IMG/VR virus record: IMGVR_UViG_3300043436_004687
Coordinates: 1-64,000 of that record
DNA length: 64,000 nucleotides
Direction: 5' to 3' (one strand)
Shown here: positions 13,042 to 64,000 of the stretch, piece after piece
How the letters are laid out: each line of letters begins with the position of its first letter
Numbering within the stretch: the stretch's first letter is position 1
Made by a program: the position numbers and the translations under genes
The notes under the pieces: generated by a model
Databases searched by the model: none
Seen by the model: the letters and a program-made list of their open reading frames with translations, nothing else
What the model was told of the DNA's origin: nothing

Positions 13042-14250
13042 ATGCAATTAGTTGAATCACATATAATCAAACAAAATAACCCATTTTATTCTGAATGTAA
13101 TTCACTATGTTTTAACTCTAAAAACCTATATAATAGTTGTTTATATAAAGTAAGGCAAGCATATATAAATGATAATGTAAACATATTATATGATTTACAC
13201 CATCTTATGAAAGATACTGAACAATATAAAGCATTACCAGCTAAAGTGTCTTCTACTGTTCTACTAATGGTACAGAAAAATTTTAAATCATACTTTAAAG
13301 CAAATAGTGACTATTATAAAACACCATCTAAATATAAAGGCAAACCCAAATTACCTAAATATTTAAACACAACTAATGGTAAATTTTTTGTTTCTTATAC
13401 CAATCAAGCAATATCTAAAAAAGTATTCAAGAAAACAAATAAAATTAAATTATCTGGAAATAATATAGAATTTAAAACAAAAATAACCGATTTTAATCAA
13501 ATTAATTGTATTAGAATTATACCCAAATTAGGGTATAATGTAATTGAAGTTGTTTATACAATATCAGATGTGACTAAATTAGAAAATAATGATAAGTATT
13601 GTAGTATTGATTTAGGTGTTAATAATTTAGCTACCATAGGTAGTAATACTATTACACCATTTATAATAAATGGTAAACCTTTAAAAAGTATAAATCAATA
13701 CTATAATAAAAAATATGCTTATTATAAAAGCATATTAGAAAAGAGAAATAATAAAAAAACAAGTAACTATTTACATAAATTAAATTTAAAAAGAAAAAAT
13801 AAAATAGATAATTATTTACATAAAGGAAGCAAAGAAATTGTTAATATATGTAAAATAAATAATATTAATACACTTGTAATAGGTAAAAATGATGGATGGA
13901 AACAAGATATTAATATAGGAAAACAAAATAATCAAAATTTTGTTAATATACCTCATAGTAGATTTATAGATATGTTAAACTATAAATGCGAAAGAGAAGG
14001 TATAAATGTTATACTACAAGAGGAAAGTTATACTAGTAAATGTAGTTTTTTAGATGATGAGAGTATTAAAAAACATGATGTTTATAAGGGTAGCAGAATA
14101 AAAAGAGGATTATTTAAGAGTGCCAAAGGCACACTTATAAATGCTGATTTAAATGGTAGTTATAACATACTAAAAAAAGCAATCCCGAACGCTTTCGCTA
14201 ACGGGATAGAGGGTGTAGGAGTACATCCAAAGGTAATTACTTTAAAGTAA
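13042..14250 (+). mobile_element. tnpB: Solo IS200/IS605-family TnpB RNA-guided nuclease, inserted antisense; omegaRNA-like hairpins overlap its 3' end
   Basis: RuvC motifs IDLGVNNLA, QEESYTSK, NADLNGSYNI; ATCCCG/CGGGAT hairpin ~14182-14207; no tnpA. Confidence 0.92.
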
Positions 14251-14842: not shown

Positions 14843-15601
14843 ATTATTATTCCTTTACGGATTAAAATAAATACTACAATAGAATTTTATCAACGTGTTG
14901 ATACTGTATTGTGATTCCCTTACGGATTAATATAAATACTAACTATAGTTTTTGGACAATCAGCAACTGATGCATTGTGATTCCATTTCAGATTAGGATA
15001 AATACTACAGTCAAAGTTTATTATGGGTCAAATAAAACATTGTGATTCCATTACGGATTAAGATAAATACCAATTGTATTAGCGAACGTTTCTCAAATGG
15101 AACGGTTGTGATTCCCTCACGGATTAGGATAAATACCAATTTATATGCTTCATATTGTTCCAACCTATCGGTTGTGATTCCCTCACGGATTAGGATAAAT
15201 ACCAATTCAAAAATGGTCCCAAAGAAAGATTGGTAGGTTGTGATTCCCTCACGGATTAGGATAAATACCAATAACTGAAACTGAATCAATGCTTTGTACT
15301 TAGTTGTGATTCCCTCACGGATTAGGATAAATACCAATATTAATATTTATGATATTACTTATTGGTTTGTTGTGATTCCCTCACGGATTAGGATAAATAC
15401 CAATGTATTCCCAACTATATTTAAAGAGATTAGGTTGTGATTCCCTCACGGATTAGGATAAATACCAATTATAATAATTTCAGATATGCAAGTTAATGTG
15501 TTGTGATTCCCTCACGGATTAGGATAAATACCAATTTATGAAGCTTTATAACAAGCTGTATGATAGTTGTGATTCCCTCACGGATTAGGATAAATACCAA
15601 T
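14843..15601. CRISPR. CRISPR array: 12 repeats of 36 nt (GTTGTGATTCCCTCACGGATTAGGATAAATACCAAT), 11 spacers of 29-30 nt
   Basis: Identical repeats start at 15105, 15171, 15237, 15303, 15369, 15434, 15500, 15566; degenerate copies at 14843, 14908, 14974, 15039, so the likely active/leader end faces cas6. Confidence 0.98.
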
Positions 15602-23348: not shown

Positions 23349-24286
23349 TAATTTTTTTTGTGTGGGTTAAAAATTATTTTTTTGGAAATGTGAAAGAAAT
23401 ACATAATATTTGAATAAATACCACATAATAAGTATGCTGTATTGCTAGTGGTAAAGCCCAATCATCTACACTCCAATTAATCTCAATACCATTATTGAAA
23501 CGAACGAAGCCGTTAGAGAAGCAAATATATTTCTTTTTAATTTTCATCTACTCTCCAATTAATTCAACATTATGGGAAAAAAAAGCTTTAATTATTGAAT
23601 ACATTGATTCCGTTTTTTCAAGCTTTTGTTGATATCTGAAGTTAAATTTAACAATTATATAATTTTCCCCAGTTTCATAAATATTGCACCAATTATCATT
23701 TTGACCACTAACCAATTGATAACGTTTATTACCACCAGTTTCTTCATAATGCCACCATCTCCCACTCATTAATGGATTTTCCATTTCATGTTTATGTGGA
23801 ATAGAACCACGAAGACAAATAAGAGTTGCTACATTTAAAATGTCTTCTAAAGCAGTATTAAATTGGTGTTTAGTTTCTCCGAAAATTTTAAGTTTCATAA
23901 TTTTATTAATTGATTAATTGATTAAACTTTTTTCTAATAATGCAGATATGAAATCTAAAGTTTTACCGCTTTTAAAACTTATTTGAACTTTATATTCAAA
24001 AACTTCAACTACACGACCTTTACCAAATTTAGGGTGATTAATTTCTTCATTAACTATAAATTCTCTTTTTGATTTAATTTGTTTAACTACTTTTGGTCTT
24101 CTAGTCTTTTTTAAAAGTGTTAACGGAAAAGCGCCATATTTTCCAAATGCGTGAGGTACACTTGCAACATTTTTCATTTCCTCAATTTCAAATTGCATTT
24201 GAATCGCAAATGGAGATGAATAACAAGTCGTGACATAATCACCTAACGTTAAATTTTTACCCATAATTTTTATTATTTTAAATTAG

Positions 24287-48488: not shown

Positions 48489-49169
48489 TTATTTAAATTT
48501 AAATTTATAACCATGTGTATGTTTTCTTTCTTCTTTACAAACCCTAGAAATCATTTTATAACTAATACCAGTTTCATTTGATGCTATTCTACCCGAAGAA
48601 AATTCTTTAATGAAATTATCATTTAAATCTAATTGAATAACTGGTTTTTCACCATTACAACTAATTAATTTATAAGGAAATTTTTCAAATTTTTCAAATA
48701 GCCATAAAAAACCACCAGCCGAATTAATTCCATTTTCATTACTTTTTTTACATGCTCTTAAAATATTACTATCTGGAATTTTAAATTCAATACCTGCATG
48801 ATTAGAATTTTCAAATGTTTTAATAAACTCACCATTTAAAGAATATTGATGGACTAACTTACCAACTTTTACTAAACCTAAACAATTATCCCAAGAATTT
48901 GTTAAATTATAACGTTTCATTAATTTTCTCATAAAAGTTTTTTCAATTTTTATTGATTCATCAATAGTACATACTTCATGATAAATTACATCTAATATTG
49001 GGTCACATTTTAAACTTCTAATCCAATTACATTTATGACTTTTACAATCACCTTTAGATTCTTTAATATGACATCTTAATCTATTTTTTGGGTTTAAAGT
49101 TCTACCAAAATATTTAATTTCATTTGTGTTTGGATTGCGTAATACATAAAAGTAACATTCTCGTTTCAT
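48489..49169 (-). CDS. GIY-YIG homing endonuclease with two NUMOD1 domains
   Basis: FYVLRNPNTNEIKYFGRT..RLRCH; VHQYSLNGEFIKTF; VIQLDLNDNFIKEF..HGYKFKF. Confidence 0.85.
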   Translation of the reverse strand: MKRECYFYVLRNPNTNEIKYFGRTLNPKNRLRCHIKESKGDCKSHKCNWIRSLKCDPILDVIYHEVCTIDESIKIEKTFMRKLMKRYNLTNSWDNCLGLVKVGKLVHQYSLNGEFIKTFENSNHAGIEFKIPDSNILRACKKSNENGINSAGGFLWLFEKFEKFPYKLISCNGEKPVIQLDLNDNFIKEFSSGRIASNETGISYKMISRVCKEERKHTHGYKFKFK

Positions 49170-49214
49170 CTTTTTATTTTAAGATAAACATGAAATATTA
49201 TTTTTAAATATTAT

Positions 49215-49262
49215 TTAATCAATATAATCACCTATAACAAGCGTTCTATTTGGGTTTAACAT
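49215..49262 (-). pseudogene. Orphan original N-terminus of the metallophosphoesterase (MLNPNRTLVIGDYID*)
   Basis: AGAACGCTTGTTATAGGTGAT versus AGAACGCTTGTAATAGGAGAT in the intact gene. Confidence 0.75.
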
Positions 49263-49796
49263 TTATTCTTTAATTTTAATATATTTTGATGGTACTTCTT
49301 CAGTTAACCAAACATTATTTTTAGACTTATAAAATTTATAACCATCTTTAAGCATTGATTTAGAATCAACTATCAATATAATTGGGTTACCTCTTCTGGA
49401 ACCTACATTGGTAGCAGTATTCAGATTATCACTTAAATGAACATGATTTCTATTCATTGGTTTTAACCCCTCTTTAAGAATTGGTTTTATGAATTTTTCA
49501 ACTGTTCCATGATACAATGTGATTGGTGGGATAGAAATTTTTAAATCAAGATCAACATTTATAGAATGGCCTTGATTTGCTCTAATTTTAGATTTATCTT
49601 CATTAAATGTAAATCGTTGTTTATCATTAGAAAAAACAATTTCATCTAATTCTTTTTTGGTAATATGATAATCTTTTAATGAACATTTTTCCAATAATTC
49701 ATCAACGCCAACCCAACCATTTTTATCTAATTTGATATTTATTGTTTCTGGTTTATGTCTTAAGATAAGACTAAGAAATTTACTATTATTTTTCAT
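49263..49796 (-). CDS. kptA: RNA 2'-phosphotransferase (Tpt1/KptA)
   Basis: LSLILRHKP, DKQRF, IRANQGHS, LYHGT, RNHVHLS. Confidence 0.95.
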   Translation of the reverse strand: MKNNSKFLSLILRHKPETINIKLDKNGWVGVDELLEKCSLKDYHITKKELDEIVFSNDKQRFTFNEDKSKIRANQGHSINVDLDLKISIPPITLYHGTVEKFIKPILKEGLKPMNRNHVHLSDNLNTATNVGSRRGNPIILIVDSKSMLKDGYKFYKSKNNVWLTEEVPSKYIKIKE

Positions 49797-50208
49797 TTTA
49801 TATATTTTAACACCAACGCATCATTTTATTACAATTAGGGCATTTTAAGTAATGATAAGTATCAGTACCCCCACCATAAGGTTCATTTTCCACTTTTTTG
49901 TCTACTTCATTCTCAAAATATTCTATTACTGCACCACAAGATGAATGAGTTCTTTGTTTAGCTTTTGATTTATCAATTTTTAAAACTTTTGCCATAATAC
50001 TTTGTTTTTAATTTATTGCAAATATAAGATTTTATATGCAAACTTCCAAATTATATTTTATTTATCTGAACCATAAATTAAAAGTTTATTGCATCACCTT
50101 AATGCTTTAGGGTTAATTACACACCAACCCCTTAGCCATTTAAGGGGTTGCTACCACTTCTTTATTTTTAATTTATTTATCATTTTATTTATTTTATTTG
50201 TTTTATTG

Positions 50209-50284
50209 TCGGGATAGCAGGGATCGAACCTGCGTGAATGTCCTACTCCCAAAGTAGGCGACTTACCAATTAGTCCATATCCCG
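50209..50284 (-). tRNA. tRNA-Pro(TGG)
   Basis: CGGGATA/TATCCCG acceptor; CCTAC-TTTGGGA-GTAGG; T-loop TTCGATC. Confidence 0.95.
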
Positions 50285-50292
50285 TGTTATTG

Positions 50293-50375
50293 TGGTGAGA
50301 TGAGGACTCGAACCTCTCCATTTTAATGACTAGATTTACAGTCTAGCTGCCATATCCAAATGACTTTATCGCACC
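50293..50375 (-). tRNA. tRNA-Tyr(GTA)
   Basis: CTAGA-CTGTAAA-TCTAG; long variable arm; T-loop TTCGAGT. Confidence 0.92.
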
Positions 50376-50388
50376 AATTTAATATAAT

Positions 50389-50428
50389 AAAAAAAACCCA
50401 GTTTAGATTTTTAATTCTAACTGGGTTT
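50389..50428 (-). terminator. Attenuator terminator A (upstream of tRNA-Tyr/Pro)
   Basis: AAACCCAGTTAGA/TCTAAACTGGGTTT stem plus U-run. Confidence 0.85.
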
Positions 50429-50465
50429 ATATTTTGTGGTTATAATTAACCAAAACTTAATATAT

Positions 50466-50558
50466 TTATGTGAAAATTTTTCCCATACCCAGTTTACCAT
50501 AAGGTCTATAACCTTTAGGTGTTTGCTGTTTTTGTTGATATGTGAAATTTGTATTCAT
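50466..50558 (-). CDS. Leader peptide A, MNTNFTYQQKQQTPKGYRPYGKLGMGKIFT
   Basis: 30 codons; 3 Tyr, 2 Pro, 4 Gln; contains antiterminator AAACTGGGT (50487-50495). Confidence 0.75.
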   Translation of the reverse strand: MNTNFTYQQKQQTPKGYRPYGKLGMGKIFT

Positions 50559-50640
50559 AGTTTTTATTTTTAATAAAATTTAGCGTGGTTTATTCAAAAC
50601 TCAAGGTTTATTGTATTTAACTCACAAATTTATAATCTCC

Positions 50641-50753
50641 TAATTTTATTGTTATTAATATATATATTGCAAATATAAGACAAAGTTTTATAATATACAA
50701 GCTTTTTTTAATTTATTTTTAAATTATTTTATAACTAATTGATAATCAAGTTA
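50641..50753 (-). repeat. Promoter block (TTG-N20-TATATTTG) repeated at 61201-61312
   Basis: About 110 nt near-identical to 61201-61312; both blocks precede leader-attenuator-tRNA units. Confidence 0.85.
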
Positions 50754-51126
50754 ATTAATTTTTCTTTTCCTTAAAATTTTTTCAGTAATTTTACCACCAT
50801 TTAAAATTTTCATCTTGGTGATTAATAAATTATTCAGATGTTGATATAAGGTGTCTTCTAATTCTAATTTTTCTTTTAATGAAATTAAACGATTTTTAGA
50901 TTCTAAATAGAGTAAATTAGATATGTGTTTTTTAAATTCACTATCTTCAACATTTTCCAATTTTTTAATAAGATTTGAATATGAAAAAATTAATTTAGAG
51001 ATTGGTTTAATTAAACTTTTATTTTCATTTAATTTATCCACAATATAAGGAAGCATAGAAAGAGTATTTCTATCTCCAAAGGTACCAGTTTCAATTAATT
51101 TAATTTTCATCTTAATATTATATTAG

Positions 51127-51196
51127 TATAGATTAAGGGATTCGAACCCTTGGTTATCAAAGTATTGGTTCAGCAAAACCACTCTGCCAAACCCAT
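51127..51196 (-). pseudogene. tRNA-Ser(GCT)-like sequence lacking the 3' half of the D-arm
   Basis: ATGGGTT/AATCTAT acceptor, TGGCAGAGTGG, TGGTT-TTGCTG-AACCA, AAGGG-TTCGAAT-CCCTT. Confidence 0.6.
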
Positions 51197-51199
51197 GTC

Positions 51200-51905
51200 C
51201 TTTACTTTGAATTTAATGCTTAATCAAAGTTTCTTATAACTCATTATATCTAGTTGATCAAACCAATAAAAAGTTAAGTTCAATTTTATATTTCAAGTCA
51301 AAATTGTAAAAACATAGAGTATTTTATAATAAAATACTAAATCAATTGTTATTTTAAGTTCACCAATAAAGAACTGCATTTAGCACCCTCTTGTCTTATA
51401 ATAGCACTTTCGACAATTTGTCAGCTAACAAGAGTAGGGTCAGTAGTTAATCAAGACATTTTATAATATGCTACCACGTATTTCTTTGGTTCACTTATTA
51501 ACTATTTTGCTGAGAACTTCTCATGGTTTATAGATACATATCTCATACATTATCATCCATGGATTACATTACTATAATCTTCTAATTAAAGTTGGTAGAT
51601 TTCAACTTATTTTAAATAAACACATCCATCAAGATTGGGAGAACTATACCCGAATTTTACTGGGACGATTTTACTCACTGACTACGGCAAATCCCAAATT
51701 TCTCATACTCCACAAACATAACACTTCTTGATAATGTTGTAATAAAACTCAGCTTACTTCTACCTTAGCTTTTGATAAGTAACTGATTCTCACAGTTTTT
51801 AATTTTAATTACTTGTTTGTCTTTCTATGTGCTTATTTTTAAATTAAAGGAGAAGAGGCTTTACAAACGCACTTTAAACTATTTTGTTACGTTCTCCTTT
51901 AATTT
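51200..51905 (-). ncRNA. Candidate large structured ncRNA
   Basis: About 700 nt without a long ORF after a promoter (~51910); helices 51841-51854/51892-51905, 51388-51394/51428-51434 and others. Confidence 0.45.
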
Positions 51906-52652
51906 CTTTGCAAATATAAATTAAAAATTCAATACTTGCAAATTATTTTTTAATTAATTTAAAACTTTCTAAAAGTCCCTTTTCTAAAGCCTCTTCATAA
52001 GTTTTGTATTCATTATTATCACCAAAACTATAAGTACCATCCTCAATGAAATCATTTAAAACATCTCTTTTATTAGGATCCCCCATATATTTTTCAGATA
52101 AATTAAATTTTAACGCTTGTACACACCAATTAGTCCCGTTTAAATAATGCTCTGCCCAAACTTTAATTTCAATATTGTGAACCTCTCTAAACCATTTCTG
52201 AAGGAAAGATTGAGTTGGTGCAGAAATGTATCCATCGTTCAAACCAGAACCCATAAACCCATAATTTGCATAATAACAATATTTACCAACATTGCTATAT
52301 AAAGAAGCTTCATGTCCATATCTTTGGATGATAGAGAACCCATAATTTTTAGCTAATTGAGCAACTTCAAAGCTTACTAATTGTTCTACCATAAATTATA
52401 AAAAATTTAAAAATAAAAATTTCCCAATATAAAACCAAGATATTGCACAAAAAGCAAATACAAATGGTTCAGCGGCATTAAATAATTTTTCCAATTTTGC
52501 TTCTAACTCTGGATTAATAAAATTATCCTTATCTGCCATTGCTAAATCTTCAATATTTGAATTTATAAGTATTAATATAGTTATAATAATCCAAAATATA
52601 AACATAATTGGTTTAATAGGAAGAATGAATATGTTAAAAACCAACTGTTTCA

Positions 52653-55600
52653 TTAGAAACCAATAGTAACATTAGGTGTAATGTAATCTATCCCGTCCCA
52701 ATTTGTATAACAAACGCCATAAGTAATTTTACCCACCGAATAACTAATTCCAGAACCATATTCAATGAAACCATTACCAACTTGGTTGTTAAAATAACTA
52801 CCAGCACCAAATATAATATTAGCATTAACAGCACCCAGAGGGAATGATGGGACTACTTTTACTTCCCAGTAGTAATTACCTATAGAGTCAGATGTATATA
52901 TTTTATCACCATTTTTATAATCATAAGGACATGCTGTGGTTTCATCCAGTACTTGTTCATAATTACCAGAAAAATATTTTCTACTACCTAAACCTCTAAG
53001 ATTTCCACGCCCTAAAACAAAACCTAATGATAGGTTATCACGAGAAACACCAAATTCTAAACTAGGGTATGCAGCATCTCTAAATTCATATGAATTTGAG
53101 TTGTCACCATAATCATTACCATTTGAAATCGATAAATTTAAAGCAACATATTTAGACCATTTTGGTTTGTCTGTTTTAACAGAATCCACTGAAGTAGAAT
53201 CAACATTTACGGAAACCGCTTTTGTGTGATGTACACCAGCATGTCTTTTTTGACTAAAAGAAAGAATAGTAAATAATAATGTAATAAATAATAATTTTTT
53301 CATAATTTTATATTTTTAGTTAATAATTAAAGTACAAAAATATAACAAAAATTTATACTTTCCAAATTTATTTTAAGATTTTAATAAATAAATTTATCTT
53401 TAAGTTTAAATGATTTACTATCATATGTAAAAGAACCATGTAATTCACCTGGAACACCATAACTATTAGACGCATTAAAATATATCGACATATAAAAATC
53501 TTTTTTGTCACCAAATTTTGGATAAATCGAAATTGATTTTGGGTTAAATGTTTCTGGGTTATTACATGAATATTTACATTCGATTAAAGCAGAATTAATA
53601 AGTGATTTTAATTTTCCACTATTTGGTAAAGTAGATAGTTCATTTTTTTGAATAGGAAGAATATCAATTGTAGTGCTATCCGAATCTTTATTATAATCTA
53701 ATTTAATTTTTTTATTTAAACCCCATAAAGTGTCTTTAGTTTTTTTAAAGTCTGAGACTATTTTCCAATCTTCTTTATGGAAATAACCTGAACATTCATA
53801 ATTTAATTCTGGTTGACAGCTTACAAAAGCCAATGTGCTCAATAGTAGTAGAGTTCCTAATAACAATTTTTTCATTTTTAATGTTTTTAAATTAGAGTAC
53901 AAATATATAACAAATATTTGTATTATCAAAATTTATTTTAAGATTTTAATAAAATTTCTTTTATTTCTTTGGTTTATAAATTACTATTATTTTAACAATG
54001 TAATATTATTTTGAAGTACAATTGATAGTTTAATCGCATTTGCCTTAGAAATTAAGATATATGCACCATCTAAATCCTCAAGATAAATATTATTAGAGAA
54101 ATCGTATAGATTAATATTAAAACCATCCCCATGGTCTCTTATATTAGATTTAGGTGGGATTTTACTAAAAACTTTTAATTTATCAATTAACATTTGTAAA
54201 CCTTCTTTATTACCAATAAAAATAGTACCAACATCATAAATATAATTATATTTACCATTTTTAAATTGAAAAATGAAATATGTTGTTTCAACCCCATTTT
54301 CAACATCTTTTTGTATCTTCCAATTATATTCCACACCTTTTGCTAGTGTTGTTGTAATTATTTGTTGACTAAATGTTGTAAATGCGCTCAATAATAGTAG
54401 AGTTCCTAATAATAATTTTTTCATTTTATTTTTATTTAGAAATTGCCATTATAATTGCAGCACCAACCCATAATCCAATTATTGAAAGAATTATTATACC
54501 TATTGTCTTCAATATTTTACCACCTTGTTTTTGTTCTGCTTCTCTTTTTGCACCCCTATCTTTAAAATCATCATTTGGATTTTGAATAATGTGACTAATA
54601 GCTTCAAAAATTGATTGTAATCTGCTATTAGATGCACTTATTTCACTAGGTTCATCGATAGCACCAATTTGTTTCTGAATTTCAACTGTTATTTTAGTTT
54701 TACCGCTATCACCTTCAATTACATCAATAATTATTCGATACATACCTGCAAATAACCCAGTTGTAAATTTGAATTGACCTAATAATTCATCATATGATTC
54801 TAACGTATATGATGGTTCATAATTGTTAAGTTTTTTAATTGCTAACACAACTTCAAAAATCGATTTAGATACTTGAATATCCCTTTTAATAATTTGATTC
54901 ATTTTATTTATTTTTAAATTAGAATACAAAGATAATACAAATATTTGTATTATCAAAATTTATTTTAAGATTTTAATAAAATTTCTTTTATTAAGTAAGT
55001 AATGTTTTTTAATTTTACTATTTAATAAATTTCATTAATTCCTTTTTAATATTTTCATATTCTTCTTGAGTAATTACACCCAAGTCTAGTTTTATTTTTG
55101 TTTTCTGTAATTCAGCTAGTGCTTGGTCGCTTGTTATTGATGCTTTTGGGTTTATTAATTCCCCATATTGTAGTGCAAGGTCTAAATTTAAAACAGTAAT
55201 ATCCATTCCAGGATTATCAAATATAACCATTACACCTGCGTTTGTTGCTTTCTTTCCATTTTTGACAAACTTTATATCCTCAATTTCTACTTCACTTCCT
55301 TTAAACGCATCGGGTAAATAAGTTATACCACTTAATATCGCACTTCCCATTCTGCCCAACATTAAATAACTAAAAATATTTACATTTTGGTTCGACGAAC
55401 CAAAAATTCCTGGTGTTTGTTGATTTGATGTATTAGTTCCACTTGGTTTCCCTAACAACATTTTATCACCAATTTGTAAAGTCGAACCATCTACAAAATT
55501 TAAATATTTAAATTTTGTAGAATTCGAAATTGATTTTACCCATTCTGTGTCATTTAATTTTGATATGAATAATGTATCGGCTAATTGGGCTGATGTTGAA

Positions 55601-55974
55601 ATACTAAACCCTAAAAAGAGTAATAAAATCGTTTTCTTCATTTTATTTGTTTTTGATTAAGATAAGAAGTTAAATATTATATTTGAACCAATAGAATATT
55701 AATATTCTATTGAGTTTCCTACAACTAGATTAACTGGTTGGAATAATACATTCATTCCATTAATTAAAGTAATTGTAACATTTTTAGTATTACCAGAACA
55801 GACATCTACCAATGTTAAATTTGTTTTTGTAATAGTTTGGTTGCTAGAACTAATACTAGTCACAGTTTCACCAATACTAGTTATCTTACCTATTAAACAA
55901 TCATTAGGCTCATTCTCACAACTTGTTAATGTTAGCATTAGCATTAACACTAATAATGTAATATTTTTTTTCAT
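52653..55974 (-). CDS. Array of mostly exported/lipoprotein genes in repeated promoter cassettes (52653-53303, 53381-53875, 53987-54424, 54432-54902, 55018-55641, 55699-55974)
   Basis: MKK-hydrophobic signal peptides; shared upstream repeat; SHOCT-like C-terminus in 55018-55641. Confidence 0.7.
53876..53965 (-). repeat. Promoter/leader cassette repeat; copies near 38572-38605, 53330-53385, 54903-54992, 55975-56005
   Basis: ttttaaattagagtacaaa(t/g)ata and caaaatttattttaagattttaataaaatttc shared. Confidence 0.8.
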
Positions 55975-56098
55975 CCTTAATATTTTAAATTAGAGTACAA
56001 ATATACTATTTTATTTTTACATAACAAATAAAATACCAAAATTTATTCCGTTAAATAATACTAAACTAATGAAACCCAACCTATCTTCAATATTAATT

Positions 56099-56836
56099 TT
56101 ATATTTTTTCATCAATCTTTTTTTTTAAATCTTCTTTAATTTCATTTAATTGTTTTGATAATTCTTCAATAGTATCAATACTAGCATTATTATTTCTTTC
56201 TTTATCGGTGAAAAAATTAGAAACATATCCAACTAAAGCACCAAATAAACCGATTCCAGAAATCATAAGTAAAATAGAAACTATTCTACCACCCTCAGTA
56301 ATAGGAAATTTATCACCATAACCAACTGTTGTAATTGTACAAACAGCCCACCACATTGCATCGTATGCGTTTTTTATATTACATTCTGGTAAAACTTCAA
56401 ATTGCATTATTGAAATTGTTGCAAATGTGACTAATAACACCCCAAATACTAACATTGATTTAAACGCTGAATTTATGCTTTCTAGCACAAACTCTATTGT
56501 CGTTTTAACACATCTAATTGTCACACCAACAGTTAACCAAGATAACGAATAAAATGGTAAACAAAGAAATATATCAACCCAACTGATTTTTAAAAATTTT
56601 ATTTTGTTCTTAGATAAATAAAATCTATAACCAAAATCAGCTAAGAAAAAATAACAGACAACATGTAACATTTCATTCAACTTAGGACCAGATAATATTG
56701 TGTCAACTAATAAAATTAGCAAACATAATATTGAAAATGTAATCCTAACATAATGATATCGACCTTCAACAACCTCATCATTTAAATATTCTTTAAATGG
56801 GGATGTTAAATTTTCTTCTTTTCTTTGTACAAACAT
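56099..56836 (-). CDS. Potassium channel (Kv/MVP-like)
   Basis: Pore helix and filter [17 protein letters not shown]; multiple TM helices; C-terminal coiled coil. Confidence 0.93.
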
Positions 56837-57201
56837 TATCTTCTACTTGACGAACTTTTACTACTTGAACTACCAAAAGAGGATTTACTTCTATTAGAAG
56901 ATGAATTACTAGTTGTAGTATTTTTATTACCACCAAAACCAGTTGTTTTAGGTTTTGAGTTAGATGGTGTTGTTTTGGTAAATGATTTTTGACTTTTTGT
57001 TGGTTTTGAAATTTCCTTAGCTCTACTTGTTACTGCTGATGATACCTTATTAGAGTTAGGTGATTTGATATTACTTTTCACACTAGCTTTAGAATTTACA
57101 ACAATTTCAGGTTGATTAACTTGGATGTTTGAACTAGTTTGTTGACTATCTTTACAAGAAAATAGTGCGAATAACAAACTAAAAATTATTAATTTTTTCA
57201 T
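56836..57201 (-). CDS. Lipoprotein with Ser/Thr/Gly-rich tail
   Basis: LFALFSC lipobox; [19 protein letters not shown]. Confidence 0.65.
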
Positions 57202-57264
57202 AATTTGTGTTTTTAATTGTTAATATTGAGGCAAATATATAACAAATAATTTTAATAACCTAAT

Positions 57265-58338
57265 TTATTTTAAATTATTTTTATAATTATTAATCTCACT
57301 AATTAAATTTTCTTTTATTTCAAGTGGAGCTTTCTTTTTATTACCCTTAGTCTGAAATTGTAATAACCTATAATTACCACCATCAATACCTAATTCAAAT
57401 GTGCCCCTAATTTTTAATTCTAAATTATGATATTTATAAATTAAACTTTGCCCATATTTACATTTTTCCCAATAACCAGACCCACCAACACAATGTCTCA
57501 TTTCTTGCCCCTCATAAACCAACCCAAATTTTGAAGTTAATAATGTAGAATGATTAAATGTTGGATAATCCACGTTCGGATCTAAAAATTCATTTTCCTC
57601 AGATAAAAGCTTTTTTTCTCTAATTTGATGTGACCAATTATCGTGTTCTAACTTAATCCTTTTAAGACTCCATTTCATATTTACTTTATAACCTAAATTA
57701 GGTGCATCAATAAACATATCCACAAGATTCATTTTCTTTAATTTGTGAATATGTTTAAAAAACATTGTTTTATCTAAACAATGGTTTAGATAATAGTATA
57801 TTGGTTGGTAACGAGAAACTTTATTTTGCCAATGAATTACCTTAACACTAAGACAATTTTTGAAAGCAGACATTGGAAAATTTTCAAGTGGGACTTGGTT
57901 ATTTATTAAATTTAATTTTATAATATCTGTAGGTGTAGTATATTTTTTAAATACACAATCCAAAAATACTTTAAAATCTAATTTGATATAGTGATTAACA
58001 TCATTAATACATTCATCCAACAAAAATTCTAATCCTAAATAATTTAATAACTTAGAATCTTTCCAACAACCATAAAAATTAATAAAATTTGTTAATTTTT
58101 TATTAATCAAATCAACCTCAAACAAACCTAACGTTATAAAATTACTTTCAGAAAAATTATATAAAGAAAAATTTAATCTTCTATATTCAACATATATTCT
58201 AGTCTCATTTTTCTCAATATAATAAAAATAACAGCCACCAGTATCGTAATCACTATCATTTTTAAATTTTAACCTAATGCTTTTTAATTGATTTTTTTTA
58301 CTATAATTTTTAGCAAAAATTCTAAAACCTTTTTTCAT
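57265..58338 (-). CDS. PcfJ-like domain protein
   Basis: LVYEGQEMRHCVGG..SLIYKY..TFEL..LLQFQTKGN. Confidence 0.7.
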   Translation of the reverse strand: MKKGFRIFAKNYSKKNQLKSIRLKFKNDSDYDTGGCYFYYIEKNETRIYVEYRRLNFSLYNFSESNFITLGLFEVDLINKKLTNFINFYGCWKDSKLLNYLGLEFLLDECINDVNHYIKLDFKVFLDCVFKKYTTPTDIIKLNLINNQVPLENFPMSAFKNCLSVKVIHWQNKVSRYQPIYYYLNHCLDKTMFFKHIHKLKKMNLVDMFIDAPNLGYKVNMKWSLKRIKLEHDNWSHQIREKKLLSEENEFLDPNVDYPTFNHSTLLTSKFGLVYEGQEMRHCVGGSGYWEKCKYGQSLIYKYHNLELKIRGTFELGIDGGNYRLLQFQTKGNKKKAPLEIKENLISEINNYKNNLK

Positions 58339-59122
58339 TAATTTCTATTAAAGGGTTATACAAATTTTCTAAAGCTATTACTAATTTTTGTAAGTCTCCC
58401 TTATAAAATCCACTACAATTAATACAATTTATTTCAACCATTTTCCAACCATCTGGTGTTAAGCAAATATCCATCACAAAACATTCAGCTACTTGGTATA
58501 AGTCAACCATTTTTTGAGCAAATTCTAAACCCTCTGGTTCAACATTTTCTTCATAAGCAACATATTGGCCAAATCTATAATATGAACTAGTGACTATCTT
58601 ACCACCAACAATCCAAATTCTAGCTTCCTTATATATTGTTTTAGGTTTACCAATTTGAATTAACTGAGGTTCTACTAATTTAGTATAATTAACATTTAAT
58701 TTACGTTGTTCAATTAAATCATCCCATTTAGTTTTGGTAAATAATTGACCATTAAATAACTTAGAATCTTTACAAGGTCTTATGAATTTAGTTTCATTGT
58801 AATCCCATTCTATAGGGTCAAGAAATTCTTTAATCTCACTATCATAATTTAAAAGATTTTCTTTATAAAATTTAGAATAAATTGAATAATCATGATTCCC
58901 ACCAAAGAATGAACCAGGATACCAATCTTTTTCAGCAGCTAATTTTGCCATTCTAATTGAACCGAATGTGAATACATCTTTACGTTTAGTTTTTACTTGA
59001 AAATCATCGGAATTAGGTAAACAAGTGATAACCTCAAACTCCAAATTTAATTTAGTTAAAGTGTCAAATATAAGATTATAATTTACTTCCCTGAAAACAT
59101 TTTCTTGGATTACGTAGTACAT
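58322..59122 (-). CDS. ATP-grasp domain protein (DUF4343/R2K-like)
   Basis: FIRPCKDSKLFNG, EARIWIV, FVMDI..WKMVEIN..SGFY. Confidence 0.75.
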   Translation of the reverse strand: MYYVIQENVFREVNYNLIFDTLTKLNLEFEVITCLPNSDDFQVKTKRKDVFTFGSIRMAKLAAEKDWYPGSFFGGNHDYSIYSKFYKENLLNYDSEIKEFLDPIEWDYNETKFIRPCKDSKLFNGQLFTKTKWDDLIEQRKLNVNYTKLVEPQLIQIGKPKTIYKEARIWIVGGKIVTSSYYRFGQYVAYEENVEPEGLEFAQKMVDLYQVAECFVMDICLTPDGWKMVEINCINCSGFYKGDLQKLVIALENLYNPLIEINEKRF

Positions 59123-59685
59123 ACTTTATAAGTTGAGTTTGTTTTTTTAATTTTATTTATTTCTTCAGTTTCATCTAAAATATATTCCTCAAATTCATTA
59201 TGATTTAGTAAAAGTTTTTCATTTTCTTCCAACTCAAACATTTTTATTAAATTTTCATAATGGCGTGAATTATCTATAGGTTCGACCAAATCTAAATGAA
59301 TTTTAATACTTCCAGTAAACAAATCATCCAGTTGTTGACGAAGTTGCTTATCAGCCTCTATCTTATAGAGTTTAACTGCTTCTTGATACTCATCCTTATG
59401 TTTTTGATAATTCTCTTTTATTTTTGAAATTATATTTTCTTTGCTAATTGTAGTTTTCATAATTAATCATTTATTTAGTGCAAAGATAGTAATTAAAAAT
59501 TAATTGAACAAATTTATTTTTCTAAAAGTTCAATTATTTTTTTCTTGAAGTCTAAAATAACTTCATTGGCACTTTCCTCATCAAAAGTCGAAGTTATTAA
59601 TGAAATTAATTCTGAATCATCAAATATAAACTGTAGTTCTAGTAATTTTTTTTCTAATGTCATTTTAAATTAATTTATTTATTTG

Positions 59686-59757
59686 TACTCCCGAAGGGAA
59701 TCGAACCCTCCTTCCCAGGCTGAAAACCTGATGTCCTAACCGATAGACGACAGGAGC
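59686..59757 (-). tRNA. tRNA-Glu(TTC)
   Basis: GCTCCTG/CGGGAGT; TCAGG-TTTTCAG-CCTGG; T-loop TTCGATT. Confidence 0.95.
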
Positions 59758-59766
59758 ATAAAAATT

Positions 59767-59880
59767 AATCAAAAAGTCTTCGTCTCTCCTAGCTGGCCCA
59801 CTTGAGGATAAATCCTCGTGCCCGACTCGAACGGGAATGCTAGCGACTCAATCCAGCTTGCCATTTTCATGGTTTTGATT
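59767..59880 (-). ncRNA. GC-rich structured RNA with a T-loop, between tRNA-Asp and tRNA-Glu
   Basis: AATCAAAA/TTTTTGATT closure, AGCTGG/CCAGCT, CCCG-TTCGAGT-CGGG, GAGGA-TTTA-TCCTC. Confidence 0.6.
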
Positions 59881-59886
59881 AATTTA

Positions 59887-59961
59887 TGGCGGTCCTAGAG
59901 GGAATCGAACCCTCATCATGCCCGTGACAGGGGCGTATCCTAGCCATTGAACGATAGGACC
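59887..59961 (-). tRNA. tRNA-Asp(GTC), CCA encoded
   Basis: GGTCCTA/TAGGACC+G+CCA; GCCC-CTGTCAC-GGGC. Confidence 0.96.
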
Positions 59962-59963
59962 TT

Positions 59964-60797
59964 TTATTTTAACCATTTTCTTATAGCATTATCACTAACA
60001 CCATATTTCCTACCAGTTGCAGAATAACCTAATTGATCAACTTCTTTTAATAAAATCTCTTTACTAGGTCTATCTTTAACTTTTCTTAATTTAGTTGAAC
60101 TTTCGATTTGTTTATTAGTCCTCGCATTATTAATTAATTTTTCAGAATTTAATAATATTTTATCTTCATTTAATTTTTCAATCTTAACATATTTTATTTT
60201 TAATCTATTATGACCAATACAATGAGTTTTTGTTTGACTATGACAATTTGGGCATAAATATCTTAAATTTTCCAACCTATTATCACTATTATCACCATTA
60301 ATATGATCAATTTCTAATTTAATTTTATTTCCACACCAAATATCTATTATGCTACAATTTATATTACTACATTTATAAGATAATAATTTATCTTGAATAA
60401 TTCTTTTCTTTACTACATTTTTACTAACACTAGAATTTAAAATAAATATTTCATTATTAGTTAATATTCTACTGTATTTATTACCTCTATTATATTTATA
60501 TTTTAATATTGAAACATCAATTCCATATAACAAACAATATTTATCTAATGTTTGAAAATTCCCAGATTTTAATGTTATATTTAAATTTCTTAATACATCC
60601 GATTTACATTCTGATTTAGATATTGCATTAAGTAAATTTTCTTTAGTCCAATTATGTGTTCTTTTATAACCACTAGTATTTAAACCAAATTTTGTTAAAT
60701 TATATCTTATTTTACCCTCACTAACCTCAAAAAAGTTACTTAATTTTTTAATTGTATAACCCTCTTTAATTTTTTCTTTTAAAATTTCTATATCCAT
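59964..60797 (-). CDS. HNH homing endonuclease within a tRNA operon
   Basis: LEIDHINGDNSDNRLENLRYLCPNCHSQT; HTH-like ends. Confidence 0.9.
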   Translation of the reverse strand: MDIEILKEKIKEGYTIKKLSNFFEVSEGKIRYNLTKFGLNTSGYKRTHNWTKENLLNAISKSECKSDVLRNLNITLKSGNFQTLDKYCLLYGIDVSILKYKYNRGNKYSRILTNNEIFILNSSVSKNVVKKRIIQDKLLSYKCSNINCSIIDIWCGNKIKLEIDHINGDNSDNRLENLRYLCPNCHSQTKTHCIGHNRLKIKYVKIEKLNEDKILLNSEKLINNARTNKQIESSTKLRKVKDRPSKEILLKEVDQLGYSATGRKYGVSDNAIRKWLK

Positions 60798-60889
60798 ATC
60801 TTTTATTATAAATATAGAAACTTTAAAAAAAGTAAACTAAGTAAAGATAATAATTTAAATAACCCTATTATTACATAATTTACACTAAG

Positions 60890-60962
60890 TGAGTTCTATG
60901 GTATTCGAAACTATTCCCAATGCTCTTCAGGCATTTGTGCGCACCAGCTACACCAAAAACTC
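60890..60962 (-). tRNA. tRNA-Phe(GAA)
   Basis: GAGTTTT/AGAACTC; AATGC-CTGAAGA-GCATT. Confidence 0.9.
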
Positions 60963-60968
60963 TTTTTG

Positions 60969-61042
60969 TGGAGGATAACAAGATTCGAACTGTTGACCCC
61001 TTGCGTGCAAGGCAAGTGCTCTACCAACTAAGCTAATCCCCC
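60969..61042 (-). tRNA. tRNA-Ala(TGC)
   Basis: G3-U70 identity pair; CTTGC-CTTGCAC-GCAAG. Confidence 0.95.
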
Positions 61043-61051
61043 ATTTTATTC

Positions 61052-61088
61052 AAAAAAAAAAACTCAACCTAATTAAAAGTTGAGTTTT
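61052..61088 (-). terminator. Attenuator terminator B
   Basis: AAAACTCAACTT/AGGTTGAGTTTT stem plus long U-run. Confidence 0.88.
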
Positions 61089-61110
61089 ATAATTTATAAA
61101 TGTTTTACAT

Positions 61111-61200
61111 TTAACTAAATTCCATACTCAACTTACCAAAGCCATAATCTTCAGCTATTGCTTCAAAAGCAAAATCAAATATGTTATTAAGTGTTTTCAT
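61111..61200 (-). CDS. Leader peptide B, MKTLNNIFDFAFEAIAEDYGFGKLSMEFS
   Basis: 29 codons; F/D/A/E are 11 of codons 8-21; antiterminator AAGTTGAGT at 61126-61134. Confidence 0.8.
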   Translation of the reverse strand: MKTLNNIFDFAFEAIAEDYGFGKLSMEFS

Positions 61201-61309
61201 AGTTTTTATTGTTATTAATATATAGTGCAAATATAAGATAAAGTTTTATAATATGCAAGTTTTTTTTAATTTATTTTTTAAATTATTTTATAACTAATTG
61301 ATAACCAAG

Positions 61310-61525
61310 TTACTTTTTACGCATTTTAGCTTGAAAAGTTTCCAATTTTTTAATCATTTGACCATCTGTTTTATCAAATACTGACCAAATTCCAGAGACC
61401 ATTGCCATAAGGGCACCACTAAGAGTTAAAAATGTTGCGGAATCTAAAACACCATAAGTTGTTAAAAATACACCAAGTGCTGTAAGCACATATCTAATTA
61501 TCGATAAAATTTGTTCTTTGTTCAT
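61310..61525 (-). CDS. Putative holin (two TM helices, basic C-terminus)
   Basis: EQILSIIRYVLTALGVFL..SGIWSVFDK, resembling Pam3-gp28-type holins. Confidence 0.6.
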   Translation of the reverse strand: MNKEQILSIIRYVLTALGVFLTTYGVLDSATFLTLSGALMAMVSGIWSVFDKTDGQMIKKLETFQAKMRKK

Positions 61526-61578
61526 ATTTAAATAGTTTATTAATAAATATATTTAAAAAATTAAAAAATTATTTTATT

Positions 61579-61650
61579 TGGTAGTGAAGGTGGGATTCGA
61601 ACCCACAAACTCCCTGTTTCTAAGACAGAATACTCTACCGCTTCTTAAAT
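61579..61650 (-). pseudogene. 3' part of a tRNA (TAG anticodon, short variable loop, CCA) whose 5' acceptor strand lies at 63081-63087
   Basis: GCGGTAGAGT, TCTGT-CTTAGAA-ACAGG, GTGGG-TTCGAAT-CCCAC, CTTCACT-A-CCA; complementary GGTGAAG only beyond the tnpB element. Confidence 0.7.
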
Positions 61651-61751
61651 AATATACATTTCTGTACATAACTCAATTCCTAATTCAACAAATAAACTAA
61701 TGTTCATTCTCCAAAGGCTTATATTCCCCATTGCGGATGGGTATATTATTT

Positions 61752-62894
61752 TTATTTTAATCCTAATAACCTAATTCCTTCATTCTTTATATTGATAGCT
61801 GCATTCAAATCCCTATTAATACTCAAATTACATTCACTACAATTATATAACCTATGTTTCAATTCTAAATCTATTTTTTTATTCCCACAACAACTACATA
61901 ATTTACTACTAGCAAACCATCTATCAATATCAACTAAATCCCTACCATACCATTCAGATTTATATTTAAGTATATTCTTAAATCTATTTAAACTCAATTC
62001 TTGTATAGATTTAGCTAATTTATGATTCTTCATCATACCACTTACATTTAAATTTTCAATTACTATAACTTGGTTATCATTTAGTAATTTATTTGCTACT
62101 TCATGTAAATAATTTTCTTTTTTATTAGTTAATTTTTCATTAAATTTAGCTAATTTTATTCTAGCTTTTTCTTTATTTTTACTACCATTTTCTTTTTTAC
62201 TTAAATTCTTATGTAATTTAGCTAACTTGTTTTTGTTATTTCTAATTATTTTTAAGTTATCATATTCTACACCATTTGAATCAACTATAAATGTTTTTAT
62301 TCCTAAATCAATTCCTACTATATTATTTTTAGGCGTATCTAATTCTAATAATTCATTTGAATCAACTAATATACTTAAAAAATATTTGTTTGATTTAGTT
62401 TTAGATAGTGTAGCTGATTTAATTCCTTCTTTATATTTGTTAAGATAATTAACATACTTATCTGACGTTCTAAATTTAATATCTTTTAATTGACTTGTAA
62501 GTGTTAACTTATTTGATAAATAATTATTTTTCTTAGATATTGCTTCTAATGGAAATCTACAACTTTGTATATTATCATGTTTTGATTTAAAATTAGGAAA
62601 CCCACTTCCATTTATAAAAAATCGTTTATAGCTATCTAACAAATTAATTACAGATTGTTTCAATACTTTGGTATTATGATTAGTTAACCAAATATAATCT
62701 GAATTTTTAGTTAGAGTTTGATGAAAATAGTTACCCAATTCTTTCAACCCCAAATTGCTTTTATCTTTTAAATAAGATTCTTTTTTAAGGGATAAGCAAT
62801 TATTAAATACGAATCGATAGCTACCAAACAAATCATTTAAATATGATTGTTGTGTAGTATTAGGGTATATACGTATTTTAATTGATTTTAACAT
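61752..62894 (-). mobile_element. tnpB: Solo IS200/IS605-family TnpB (HTH, RuvC, Zn finger) with downstream omegaRNA-like region
   Basis: KIRIYPN, GIDLGIK, VIENLNV, CSCCG..CSEC, RDLNAAINI. Confidence 0.95.
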
Positions 62895-63095
62895 AAAATT
62901 TTATGGGTATATTAATACCCTGTTATTATAAATATAAGAATAAATTTAAAAAGTTCAATATTATTATGTTAAATTTAGTTAAAATTATACATTATGGTTT
63001 TAAATCTATTTAATTGTTTATGTTTGTATAAGATTGTTTAGATAATTAGTTTCTGTTACTAACCCTTCGTTTTAATAGCACTTCACCATATTTTG

Positions 63096-63179
63096 TAACC
63101 CTGACAAGATTCGAACTTGCAACCCATTGAGGGACAGCATTCTAAGTGCTGCGTGTATAGCCATTTCCACCACAGAGCC
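63096..63179 (-). tRNA. tRNA-Leu(TAG)
   Basis: CAGCA-CTTAGAA-TGCTG; long variable arm; GCAAG-TTCGAAT-CTTGT. Confidence 0.92.
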
Positions 63180-63185
63180 TTCCTT

Positions 63186-63485
63186 TTATTTTAACTTAAT
63201 AAAATCTTCTTTTTCAATTGCTTTAGTAATCCATCTTATGAGTTCACTTCCTTTAATTTCACTATGAAACTCAGTTAAACCCAAATCCTCACTTAAAACA
63301 AGTGTATTGAAAGTTTCGGTTTGAAATGAATTGGAAACTTTTTTATGTTCAACTGTTGATATAGGAAATTGGAATGTTCCGTTAGATAAATCTATATTAT
63401 AAAATAACTTTCCATTATAATAATGAGAAAATTTAGCTAATGTTTTTAATTTGTATAATTCTTTTTTTATTTCTGTTGCATTCAT
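63186..63485 (-). CDS. Hypothetical protein inside the tRNA operon
   Basis: 99-aa ORF from the track, A-rich start. Confidence 0.65.
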   Translation of the reverse strand: MNATEIKKELYKLKTLAKFSHYYNGKLFYNIDLSNGTFQFPISTVEHKKVSNSFQTETFNTLVLSEDLGLTEFHSEIKGSELIRWITKAIEKEDFIKLK

Positions 63486-63515
63486 TTTTTTTTATGTATT
63501 TAATTTATTAATTAG

Positions 63516-63601
63516 AACTGGAAGTAGGATTCGAACCTACGGTGCACTTTTCAGTAATTAGGGTTGCAATCTAATGAATTCGACCACTTTTCTATTCCAG
63601 C
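63516..63601 (-). tRNA. tRNA-Cys(GCA) with an unusually long variable arm
   Basis: GCTGGAA/TTCCAGT, U73, loop TTGCAAC, 16-nt variable region, GTAGG-TTCGAAT-CCTAC. Confidence 0.85.
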
Positions 63602-63611
63602 ATTTGTTTAA

Positions 63612-63648
63612 AATAAAAAATCCGATTAAGTTTTAATTAATCGGATTT
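63612..63648 (-). terminator. Attenuator terminator C
   Basis: AAATCCGATTAA/TTAATCGGATTT stem plus U-run. Confidence 0.85.
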
Positions 63649-63670
63649 AAAATTGTTTTATAATTATTTC

Positions 63671-63775
63671 TTAATGAAAATAATTTATTTCAAATTCCGA
63701 TTCTTCCAACCCTAATAGGATCAGTGAAGTTAAACATAAGTTAAGCGCCAATTTGAATTTATTTACTACTTTCAT
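63671..63775 (-). CDS. Leader peptide C, MKVVNKFKLALNLCLTSLILLGLEESEFEINYFH
   Basis: 34 codons; 8 Leu (five different codons) and 1 Cys in codons 9-23; antiterminator AATCGGA at 63696-63702. Confidence 0.75.
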   Translation of the reverse strand: MKVVNKFKLALNLCLTSLILLGLEESEFEINYFH

Positions 63776-64000
63776 ATTTTTAATATTAGTTCTTTATTAA
63801 TATATAGTTTATTTTTCAAAAAAATAAATATTATTTATTAATTTTATTTAAAATTTGTATTGAATTTGATATTGTTGCTTCATTGGTGCTGTTTTCTAAC
63901 AACCAATTAACATAATTTATTAAATCAAATTTATTTATCTCATCAATTTTTTTATAATTATATTTACCACTAATGACATAAAATGTGTTGTTAGCCTTTC

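Follow-up and report, generated by a model that had tools for sequence, protein, structure and literature searches.

The window analysed here covers positions 1-64,000 of the IMG/VR contig IMGVR_UViG_3300043436_004687 (339,635 bp). Its G+C content is about 25%, nearly all of its transcription is on the minus strand, and its gene content is that of a phage, including a thymidylate synthase, a helicase, a polymerase, an HNH endonuclease and TnpB-like proteins. The program ARAGORN finds nine transfer RNA (tRNA) genes in the window, eight of which lie in three groups, at 50.2-50.4, 59.7-61.0 and 63.1-63.6 kb, and no further tRNA is found in the 10 kb past the window end. Each group is preceded by a leader that consists of a short open reading frame (ORF) and an intrinsic terminator, and the three leaders with their tRNA genes (to be referred to as units A, B and C) are the subject of this analysis. 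The layout given in a preliminary description of this DNA, an ORF of 29-34 codons followed by a terminator and then by tRNA genes, is seen in all three units, with every element in its assigned place. All the coordinates of the units below are on the minus strand.

In unit A, the leader ORF (50466-50558) has 30 codons, with Tyr at positions 7, 17 and 20, Pro at positions 14 and 19, and four Gln codons. Codons 22-25 contain a copy of the terminator 3' arm (AAACTGGGT, 50486-50495; segment 2). In the full-length minimum-energy fold, segment 2 is paired with a stretch closer to the start of the ORF (50526-50547; segment 1), which is the predicted anti-antiterminator. The terminator (50386-50428) has its 5' arm at 50416-50428 and its 3' arm at 50394-50407, the two forming a bulged stem of -14.7 kcal/mol that is followed by a T-run. 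This terminator was recognized from the bulged stem and the T-run, and those of units B and C came from a consensus scan. The tRNA genes (50208-50375) begin about 10 nucleotides (nt) past the T-run, with Tyr(gta) at 50292-50375 and Pro(tgg) at 50208-50284.

The leader ORF of unit B (61111-61200) has 29 codons and was called as a 29-amino-acid gene by the gene caller (L100). Its codons 8-18 encode FDFAFEAIAED, in which 10 of the 11 residues are Phe, Asp, Ala or Glu. Segment 1 (61170-61188) overlaps the first of these control codons, and the full-length fold has it paired to segment 2. Segment 2 (AAGTTGAGT, 61125-61135) occupies codons 22-26 and can form a duplex with the terminator 5' arm (ACTCAACTT). 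The terminator (61049-61088) has arms at 61077-61088 and 61059-61070, and a T-run. The genes downstream of it (59685-61042) are Ala(tgc) (60968-61042), Phe(gaa) (60889-60962), Asp(gtc) (59887-59961) and Glu(ttc) (59685-59757), and an HNH endonuclease gene (59964-60797) is inserted between the Ala/Phe and the Asp/Glu pairs. Homing-endonuclease genes of the HNH or GIY-YIG type are also located between gated tRNA genes in the related loci L103, L106, L107, L274, L278, L279 and L280.

Unit C has a leader ORF of 34 codons (63671-63775), and its codons 9-23 include eight Leu and one Cys. Segment 1 (63729-63757) pairs with the region of segment 2 in the full-length fold. Segment 2 (GAATCGGAA, 63695-63703) occupies codons 25-27, and the part that copies the terminator 3' arm is AATCGGA. 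The terminator (63610-63648) has arms at 63637-63648 and 63618-63629, and a T-run. It is followed by the genes of this unit (63095-63601), namely Cys(gca) (63515-63601), an ORF of 99 amino acids (63186-63485) and Leu(tag) (63095-63179). The first tRNA of the three units begins about 8-15 nt past the T-run.

Units A and B have promoters of the Bacteroidota type, as originally proposed. The -7 box TATATTTG starts at 50677 for unit A (promoter region 50650-50760) and at 61235 for unit B (promoter region 61210-61320), with a TTG located 17-23 nt upstream in both cases. The promoter regions of the two units are 89% identical over about 110 nt. No box of this type is found between 61235 and 59628, and therefore the Ala and Phe tRNAs, the HNH gene, and the Asp and Glu tRNAs can be transcribed only through the unit B terminator. 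Similarly, no TAnnTTTG box is present downstream of the terminator inside units A and B. Unit C has no clear promoter, the only candidate being TAAATTTG at 63933, which lacks a -33 element. The promoter regions of units A and B also share the 20-mer ATCAATTAGTTATAAAATAA (50721-50745 and 61280-61304), directly past the stop codon of the upstream gene and often preceded by TTGATA. This 20-mer was considered as a marker of the units and rejected as a widespread intergenic motif of Bacteroidota. It recurs in unrelated viral contigs (L089-L099) and at about 100 genome loci (L290-L369), in intergenic positions and nearly always in Bacteroidota, including many Flavobacterium and a Dokdonia metagenome-assembled genome with many copies.

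The position of segment 2 relative to the terminator defines the possible alternative pairings. With the 5' and 3' arms of the terminator taken as segments 3 and 4, the terminator is the 3:4 hairpin, and segment 2 can pair either with segment 1 (1:2) or with the 5' arm (2:3). The preliminary description had noted that an ORF segment copies the terminator 3' arm and can pair with the 5' arm, and the energies of this duplex bear it out, with values of -13.0, -11.0 and -9.3 kcal/mol for units A, B and C, respectively. Shuffled controls (500 per ORF) have a mean of about -5 and a standard deviation of about 1.8, giving p values of 0.002, 0.006 and 0.024. Across related phages (see below), the duplex beats its shuffles in 15 of 19 instances (p <= 0.05), 14 of them at p <= 0.024, and segment 2 is always found within codons 20-27. 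In cross-tests among leaders, the best partner is the leader's own 5' arm in seven cases out of eleven. The complementarity is 7-10 nt long in leader-type terminators. For six terminators that precede tRNAs with no leader ORF, including that of the tRNA-Arg at 24286 in the window, no complementary stretch of at least 6 nt is present within 140 nt upstream. The duplex test failed for the unit B homologs of phages with 33% G+C (p values of 0.6-0.9). Folding of these leaders indicates that their antiterminator is a split helix, which includes 6 nt upstream of the 5' arm.

Folding with ViennaRNA gives the same set of alternatives in each unit. The full transcripts are predicted to fold with segment 2 paired to the region of the control codons (1:2) and with the terminator formed (3:4), and the 1:2 anti-antiterminator, which overlaps the control codons, is part of every full-length minimum-energy fold. 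The base of the predicted 1:2 hairpin is made by AACATAT (codons 5-7) and by a TATG that is conserved downstream of segment 2. In folds that omit the 3' arm, as in a nascent transcript, the 5' arm pairs with segment 2 (2:3), in most units even when no ribosome is placed on the RNA. With a ribosome placed on the control codons, 2:3 forms in all the folded units. In the units of the window, it persists for a ribosome on codons 5-17 and is lost for a ribosome at about codon 20 or later. The folds thus predict an antiterminator that excludes the terminator and would be exposed by a ribosome located on the control codons. The terminator hairpins of the units have energies of -11 to -19 kcal/mol, and are followed by a T-run and, 8-40 nt after the hairpin, by the first tRNA. 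The leader ORFs have 24-42 codons and start with ATG in all of the 27 instances examined, and in every unit the frame is open and the stop codon lies 15-37 nt before the 5' arm.

The three strands involved in these pairings change together. Three differences between the segments of units A and B (A/G, C/T and G/A) are matched in both arms of the terminators, confirming the compensation seen earlier in this DNA. In L103 compared with L106, GTTCGGA/TCCGAAC is replaced by GTTTGGA/TCCAAAC, so that C/T in one strand goes with G/A in the other, and segment 2 and both arms are altered together. In the split helix of L274 and L278, UGUCAU/AUGAUA corresponds to UGUUGC/GUAACA, with two double compensatory changes in L278. 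In the family of unit C, GGGCTTT/AAAGCCC corresponds to GATGGGTT/AACCCATC. These changes were read sequence by sequence, as MAFFT did not bring the pairing segments into line when the C and K families were aligned. L195 is distinguished from L103 by a 1-nt insertion directly past the control run. It changes the peptide tail completely, and the control codons and segment 2 are kept. The families have in common an N-terminal module (M-K/R-N/T-..-N-I, with the DNA motif AACATAT at codons 5-7), followed by control runs that differ. These comparisons point to selection on RNA pairing and control codons rather than on the peptide.

The leaders are enriched in codons for the tRNAs that follow them, as the preliminary description had maintained. 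Before the pairing segment, such codons make up 5 of 20 in unit A (p = 0.013, with a background of 0.074), 11 of 20 in unit B (p = 8.5e-4) and 9 of 23 in unit C (p = 3.6e-4). Close relatives that could extend this comparison are absent from the GenBank phages, where a megablast search with the region gave matches only at the tRNA level, and an exact-pattern search of IMG/VR for the core of leaders A and B returned only the source contig. Relatives were instead found through an R2K-domain protein (window 58322-59122) and the 99-amino-acid protein inside unit C. The layout recurs in related huge phages with 24-33% G+C, including the published genomes LR756500, LR756501 and LR756502. We judge their hosts to be Bacteroidota, from the promoter type, a T9SS sorting domain in L274, and the prediction for the largest genomes in PMC7162821.

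The control runs differ among the relatives together with the tRNAs. In the AT-rich loci L103, L195, L106, L107, L248 and L234, a leader in which codons 5-17 are SKHSKSFKSFWSH, or a variant built from the same five residues, is located before Lys, Phe, Ser, Trp and His tRNAs. In the unit B homologs of L274, L278, L279, L280, L283 and L284 (29-33% G+C), the run FDFAFFAAEED is kept, and the tRNAs that follow are those for Phe, Glu, Asp and Ala. When the window is compared with the phages of 33% G+C, this run shows the replacements E to F, I to A and A to E as well as several synonymous changes, and all the swaps end within the Phe/Ala/Glu/Asp set. The unit C homologs of the 29-33% G+C phages have VLLVLCLLLV or a similar run, followed by tRNAs for Cys, Val and Leu. 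Val codons in the unit C leaders number two where there is no tRNA-Val (as in the window), four with one or two tRNA-Val genes, and eight with three.

LR756502 (642 kb) has at least five further units, in which Lys/His/Phe codons precede Phe, His and Lys tRNAs, SSRSRSS precedes Arg and Ser tRNAs, a Glu/Tyr-rich run precedes Glu and Tyr tRNAs, an Ile(ATA)/Gly/Ala run precedes tRNA-Ile(tat) and Gly and Ala tRNAs, and a Gln/Asp/Pro run precedes Pro, Asp and Gln tRNAs. Two units of this genome (L286:39449 and L285:575) have no promoter and start directly past the 3' end of a tRNA, which indicates that gates are chained inside one long tRNA operon. In LR756500 (462 kb), a leader with His, Trp, Glu, Val and Leu codons precedes exactly those tRNAs. 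The leader in LR756501 (735 kb) has 42 codons and is rich in Thr, Gly, Ala, Pro, Val and Arg, and is followed by fifteen tRNAs for those six amino acids. The T-run of this unit is interrupted, and the unit was missed by the automatic leader scan and read by eye. Outside the clade, the layout is absent from 104 bacterial or archaeal and 199 unrelated viral loci, a result of little weight as these contain only 13 and 31 tRNAs, respectively.

Every leader is enriched for its own tRNA set, with p values from 1e-2 to 8e-8. For a quantitative comparison, the match was scored over fixed codons 4-20 in all leaders, against background frequencies taken from long ORFs. With nine units, the own tRNA set scores best for eight of them, and among all 362,880 permutations none scores as high as the true assignment of tRNA sets to leaders. 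With eleven units, the own set is best for ten. The observed score of 39.96 is reached by none of 2,000,000 random permutations, the best of which scores 33.45. The match is also specific to the reading frame, as 14 units give 135 matches in the frame of the ORF and 27 and 25 in the shifted frames. Leader codon content therefore tracks downstream tRNA identity, both across homologs and across unrelated units, which is the test that the preliminary description had made decisive.

From the computed anatomy, the alternative pairings and the way they co-vary, and a frame-specific codon match that extends over many units, we consider it highly probable that the units act as ribosome-mediated (leader-peptide) transcription attenuators, each controlling one group of the phage's tRNA genes. 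The trp/his/leu-type reading first suggested for this DNA is supported by the alternative folds of every unit folded and by the codon match of the relatives. In the mechanism that we infer, the host RNA polymerase would start at the Bacteroidota-type promoter, or arrive from an upstream tRNA group, and would transcribe the ORF of 24-42 codons, with codons 5-20 mostly those read by the downstream tRNAs. If decoding is fast, the ribosome would run through the ORF, and segment 2 (about codons 20-27) would be covered or re-paired with segment 1. With segment 2 unavailable, the terminator hairpin would form, and transcription would stop with no tRNA made. If a matching charged tRNA is scarce, any of the control codons could become slow, and the ribosome would stall on segment 1. 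Segment 2 would then be free to pair with the emerging 5' arm, leading to read-through and to transcription and processing of the tRNA group. The new tRNAs would relieve the stall, giving a negative feedback. Translation of the ORF, its coupling to transcription, the direction of the switch and the physiological trigger are all presumed in this scheme.

Several observations weigh against this reading. The ORF extends 2-10 codons past segment 2. A ribosome at the stop codon would thus leave segment 2 uncovered, unlike in trpL, and termination would have to make use of 1:2 re-pairing or of a ribosome inside the 2:3 loop. The 1:2 pairing is in turn a prediction from minimum-energy folds. As 2:3 is predicted with no ribosome in most units, the off state would depend on kinetics, which are invisible to folding energies. 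There are also mismatches between codons and tRNAs. Unit A has the weakest enrichment, and its four Gln codons are followed by no tRNA-Gln. The Leu codons of unit C are mostly UUA or UUG, which its tRNA-Leu(UAG) is unable to read, and three of the eight belong to the CUN box read by this tRNA. Unit U7 of LR756500 has five Ile codons, and no tRNA-Ile is detected there. The unit C leaders are hydrophobic and resemble lipoprotein signals, and by themselves they would be compatible with a small membrane peptide. Finally, the case for translation of the ORFs is made up of their frame-specific codon content and their conserved start and stop codons, features that suggest it indirectly.

The alternative 2:3 and 3:4 pairings need no ribosome in themselves, and no ribosome-binding signal is seen upstream of the ORFs, though Bacteroidota do not have strong Shine-Dalgarno sites. 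The leaders might thus be RNA switches that are independent of translation, binding tRNAs through their codons in the manner of a T-box or binding a protein, with an incidental ORF. We regard this as very unlikely, as every unit has the ATG, the open frame and the stop codon shortly before the 5' arm, and the codon match is confined to the frame of the ORF (135 matches compared to 27 and 25). Moreover, the control runs contain 5-16 cognate codons for up to six amino acids, as opposed to the one specifier codon of a T-box, and they tolerate synonymous changes and swaps of amino acids within the set. No Rfam model of the T-box or of another riboswitch matches the leaders. A related question is whether an attenuator of this kind senses particular tRNAs at all, rather than the general capacity of translation or its coupling to transcription, in which case the codon content would reflect ancestry or composition. 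The N-terminal module common to several families does indicate common descent, which could inflate the matches within a family. The permutation test nevertheless selects the true pairing among units that have different control runs. In addition, rare residues are present only where a matching tRNA follows, as seen for Trp and His in leaders of the Lys/Phe/Ser/Trp/His type. The leader before tRNA-Ile(tat) in LR756502 uses ATA codons, and leaders followed by more tRNA-Val genes have more Val codons. Sensing of general capacity alone is accordingly, in our assessment, scarcely credible.

Least probable of all, and in our opinion extremely so, is an arrangement of ordinary small-protein genes with their own terminators, in which constitutive leak-through supplies the tRNAs, and neither the codon match nor the copied segment is more than a coincidence. 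Leader B was indeed called as a gene, and the peptides of unit C have the appearance of a hydrophobic signal or lipobox. On the other hand, chance is excluded by the shuffled duplexes, the permutations and the frame test, and the tail of the peptide is unconserved and tolerates a frameshift (L195). The co-variation of three strands reflects selection on RNA pairing, and the tRNAs have no other promoter.

With the leader-peptide attenuator as the preferred reading, the suggestion that the phage makes replacement tRNAs on demand can be assessed. Its logic of tRNA gating is supported by the match between leaders and tRNAs, and the function is better worded more generally, as a negative feedback on decoding capacity. 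That host anticodon nucleases are the trigger is a conjecture, which is compatible with the design and has no support in the sequence data; the tRNA groupings show no visible fit to the target sets of the anticodon nucleases known to us. It is possible, though we remain doubtful, that the units together form a multi-channel controller of tRNA supply, in which each tRNA group has its own codon-matched sensor, some of them in series, and only the tRNAs in short supply are topped up. If so, the phage could use it, for instance, to detect and make good the losses caused by host defences such as anticodon nucleases, which cleave certain tRNAs or lower their supply.

Other features were observed in the window and in the related loci. 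TnpB-like genes (IS605 OrfB/TnpB-like; PHROG 506; Pfam OrfB_IS605 and Cas12f1-like_TNB) are located at 61752-62894 (-) and 13042-14250 (+). The former sits between units C and B, and its insertion may have displaced tRNA genes, UUA and UUG having been kept in leader C with tRNA-Leu(taa) gone. A weak Rfam tRNA match (61582-61639 (-), 31.4 bits) is positioned directly downstream of this gene, and another is found at 51127-51196 (-) (34.7 bits). Neither is called by ARAGORN, and they may be degenerate or unusual tRNAs. The second TnpB-like gene is adjoined by a tandem array (14905-15601) with at least eight copies of a 66-nt unit, 60-83% identical, for which iterons, an origin or a repeat-guided element are possibilities.

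Among the relatives, a conserved, structured-looking stretch of about 150 nt is located between a strong promoter and a tRNA-Phe gene (L274:16790-16937 and L278:17170-17321). It has neither a short ORF nor an Rfam match, and may be a leader of a different kind. Some tRNA genes are 120-135 nt long due to long internal insertions (L103:7649-7783, L195:3652-3786, L274:13037-13159 and L284:12499-12620). Rfam matches the whole tRNA model to these genes, and ARAGORN misses them. A conserved element of about 85 nt (AAAGATAGTTTCAGCAAA ... GGTTCAA.CC ... CTATCTTG), with closing inverted repeats and a piece that resembles a T-arm, is found immediately in front of tRNA-Leu(aag) or tRNA-Ser genes (L274:11080-11164, L277:2820-2906, L278:11530-11618 and L279:3480-3566, with similar elements at L103:5100-5197 and 5365-5453). 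Finally, tRNAs with the anticodon CTA, labeled 'Pyl' by ARAGORN and of the amber-suppressor type, are found at L132:140, L158:1141 and L288:17166, hinting that some relatives read TAG as a sense codon.

Why phages carry tRNA genes has been debated for decades, between the supplementation of codons and the replacement of tRNAs lost to host shut-off or defence. To our knowledge, the control of these genes has hardly been addressed so far. Work by van den Berg and co-workers from 2023 is said to concern the same topic of tRNA clusters in huge phages. A sensor that is written in the codons of the downstream tRNAs would tell what the phage monitors, namely the decoding speed of those codons, and the separately gated tRNA sets would be a readable record of the shortages that the phage expects. 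The units would also extend leader-peptide attenuation to RNA genes, with a direct loop of product feedback, and to Bacteroidota and their viruses, for which we are aware of few attenuators. The common N-terminal module with exchangeable control runs would amount to a natural series of sensor re-programming. If the mechanism holds, the design could be turned into a portable sensor that reports how available tRNAs are inside living cells.

The tRNA clusters of huge phages, in the same kind of genome, were described by Al-Shayeb et al. (2020; PMC7162821), and three published genomes of this kind, LR756500, LR756501 and LR756502, carry units. Phage tRNAs are discussed in that article either as supplementing codons or as replacing tRNAs that host defences have hit, and the terms 'attenuat', 'leader' and 'terminator' do not occur in it. 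In line with the claim of novelty made at the outset, leader-peptide attenuators before tRNA genes, of phages or of cells, were not found in the full-text literature, a search that does not extend to subscription-only journals, where an earlier report is possible.

A comparison will be made here with three types of known systems. The T-box riboswitches of Firmicutes (RF00230), located upstream of translation-related genes, also respond to the state of a particular tRNA by forming either a terminator or an antiterminator. However, a T-box works in the absence of translation, contacting the uncharged tRNA itself by means of a single specifier codon and a conserved T-box sequence. T-box leaders have 200-300 nt, and those of the units have about 150 nt, with an ORF that contains many cognate codons. 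No RF00230 match is present in the window at 49000-64000 or in ten related loci, and with this and the short, ORF-containing leaders the identification as a T-box was rejected.

The leader peptides trpL, hisL, leuL and pheL of Proteobacteria, and the multivalent ilvGMEDA and thr leaders, control amino-acid operons by attenuation. In common with leaders of this type, the units have a short ORF in which control codons are clustered, and a terminator just upstream of the genes, and their four RNA segments are predicted to form 1:2, 2:3 and 3:4 pairings that exclude one another. As in the ilv and thr leaders, several amino acids would be sensed by one leader. They lie outside the Trp, His, Leu, Thr and Phe leader families described in Rfam, which are defined by model matches and biosynthetic targets. 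A search of the window at 49000-64000 at E <= 1 gave only tRNA matches and two matches at chance level, and the ten related loci gave only tRNA matches at the gathering score. The units also have no sequence similarity to these leaders. They would sense up to six amino acids per leader, their ORF continues beyond segment 2, and some copies are located within a tRNA operon. The regulated genes differ as well, being tRNA genes in a phage of Bacteroidota instead of biosynthetic enzymes. Therefore, the signal that could be corrected is the supply of tRNA and not that of the amino acid, and the product would feed back directly on the sensor.

In function, a close parallel is the pheM leader of Escherichia coli pheST, an attenuator for phenylalanyl-tRNA synthetase, where stalling on the cognate codons raises a component needed for decoding those codons. 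That system is chromosomal, responds to one amino acid and controls a synthetase, whereas the units described here would act on the tRNAs themselves, in sets. Theirs would be a known kind of regulation on a new class of target, and one that is widespread in the largest known phages.

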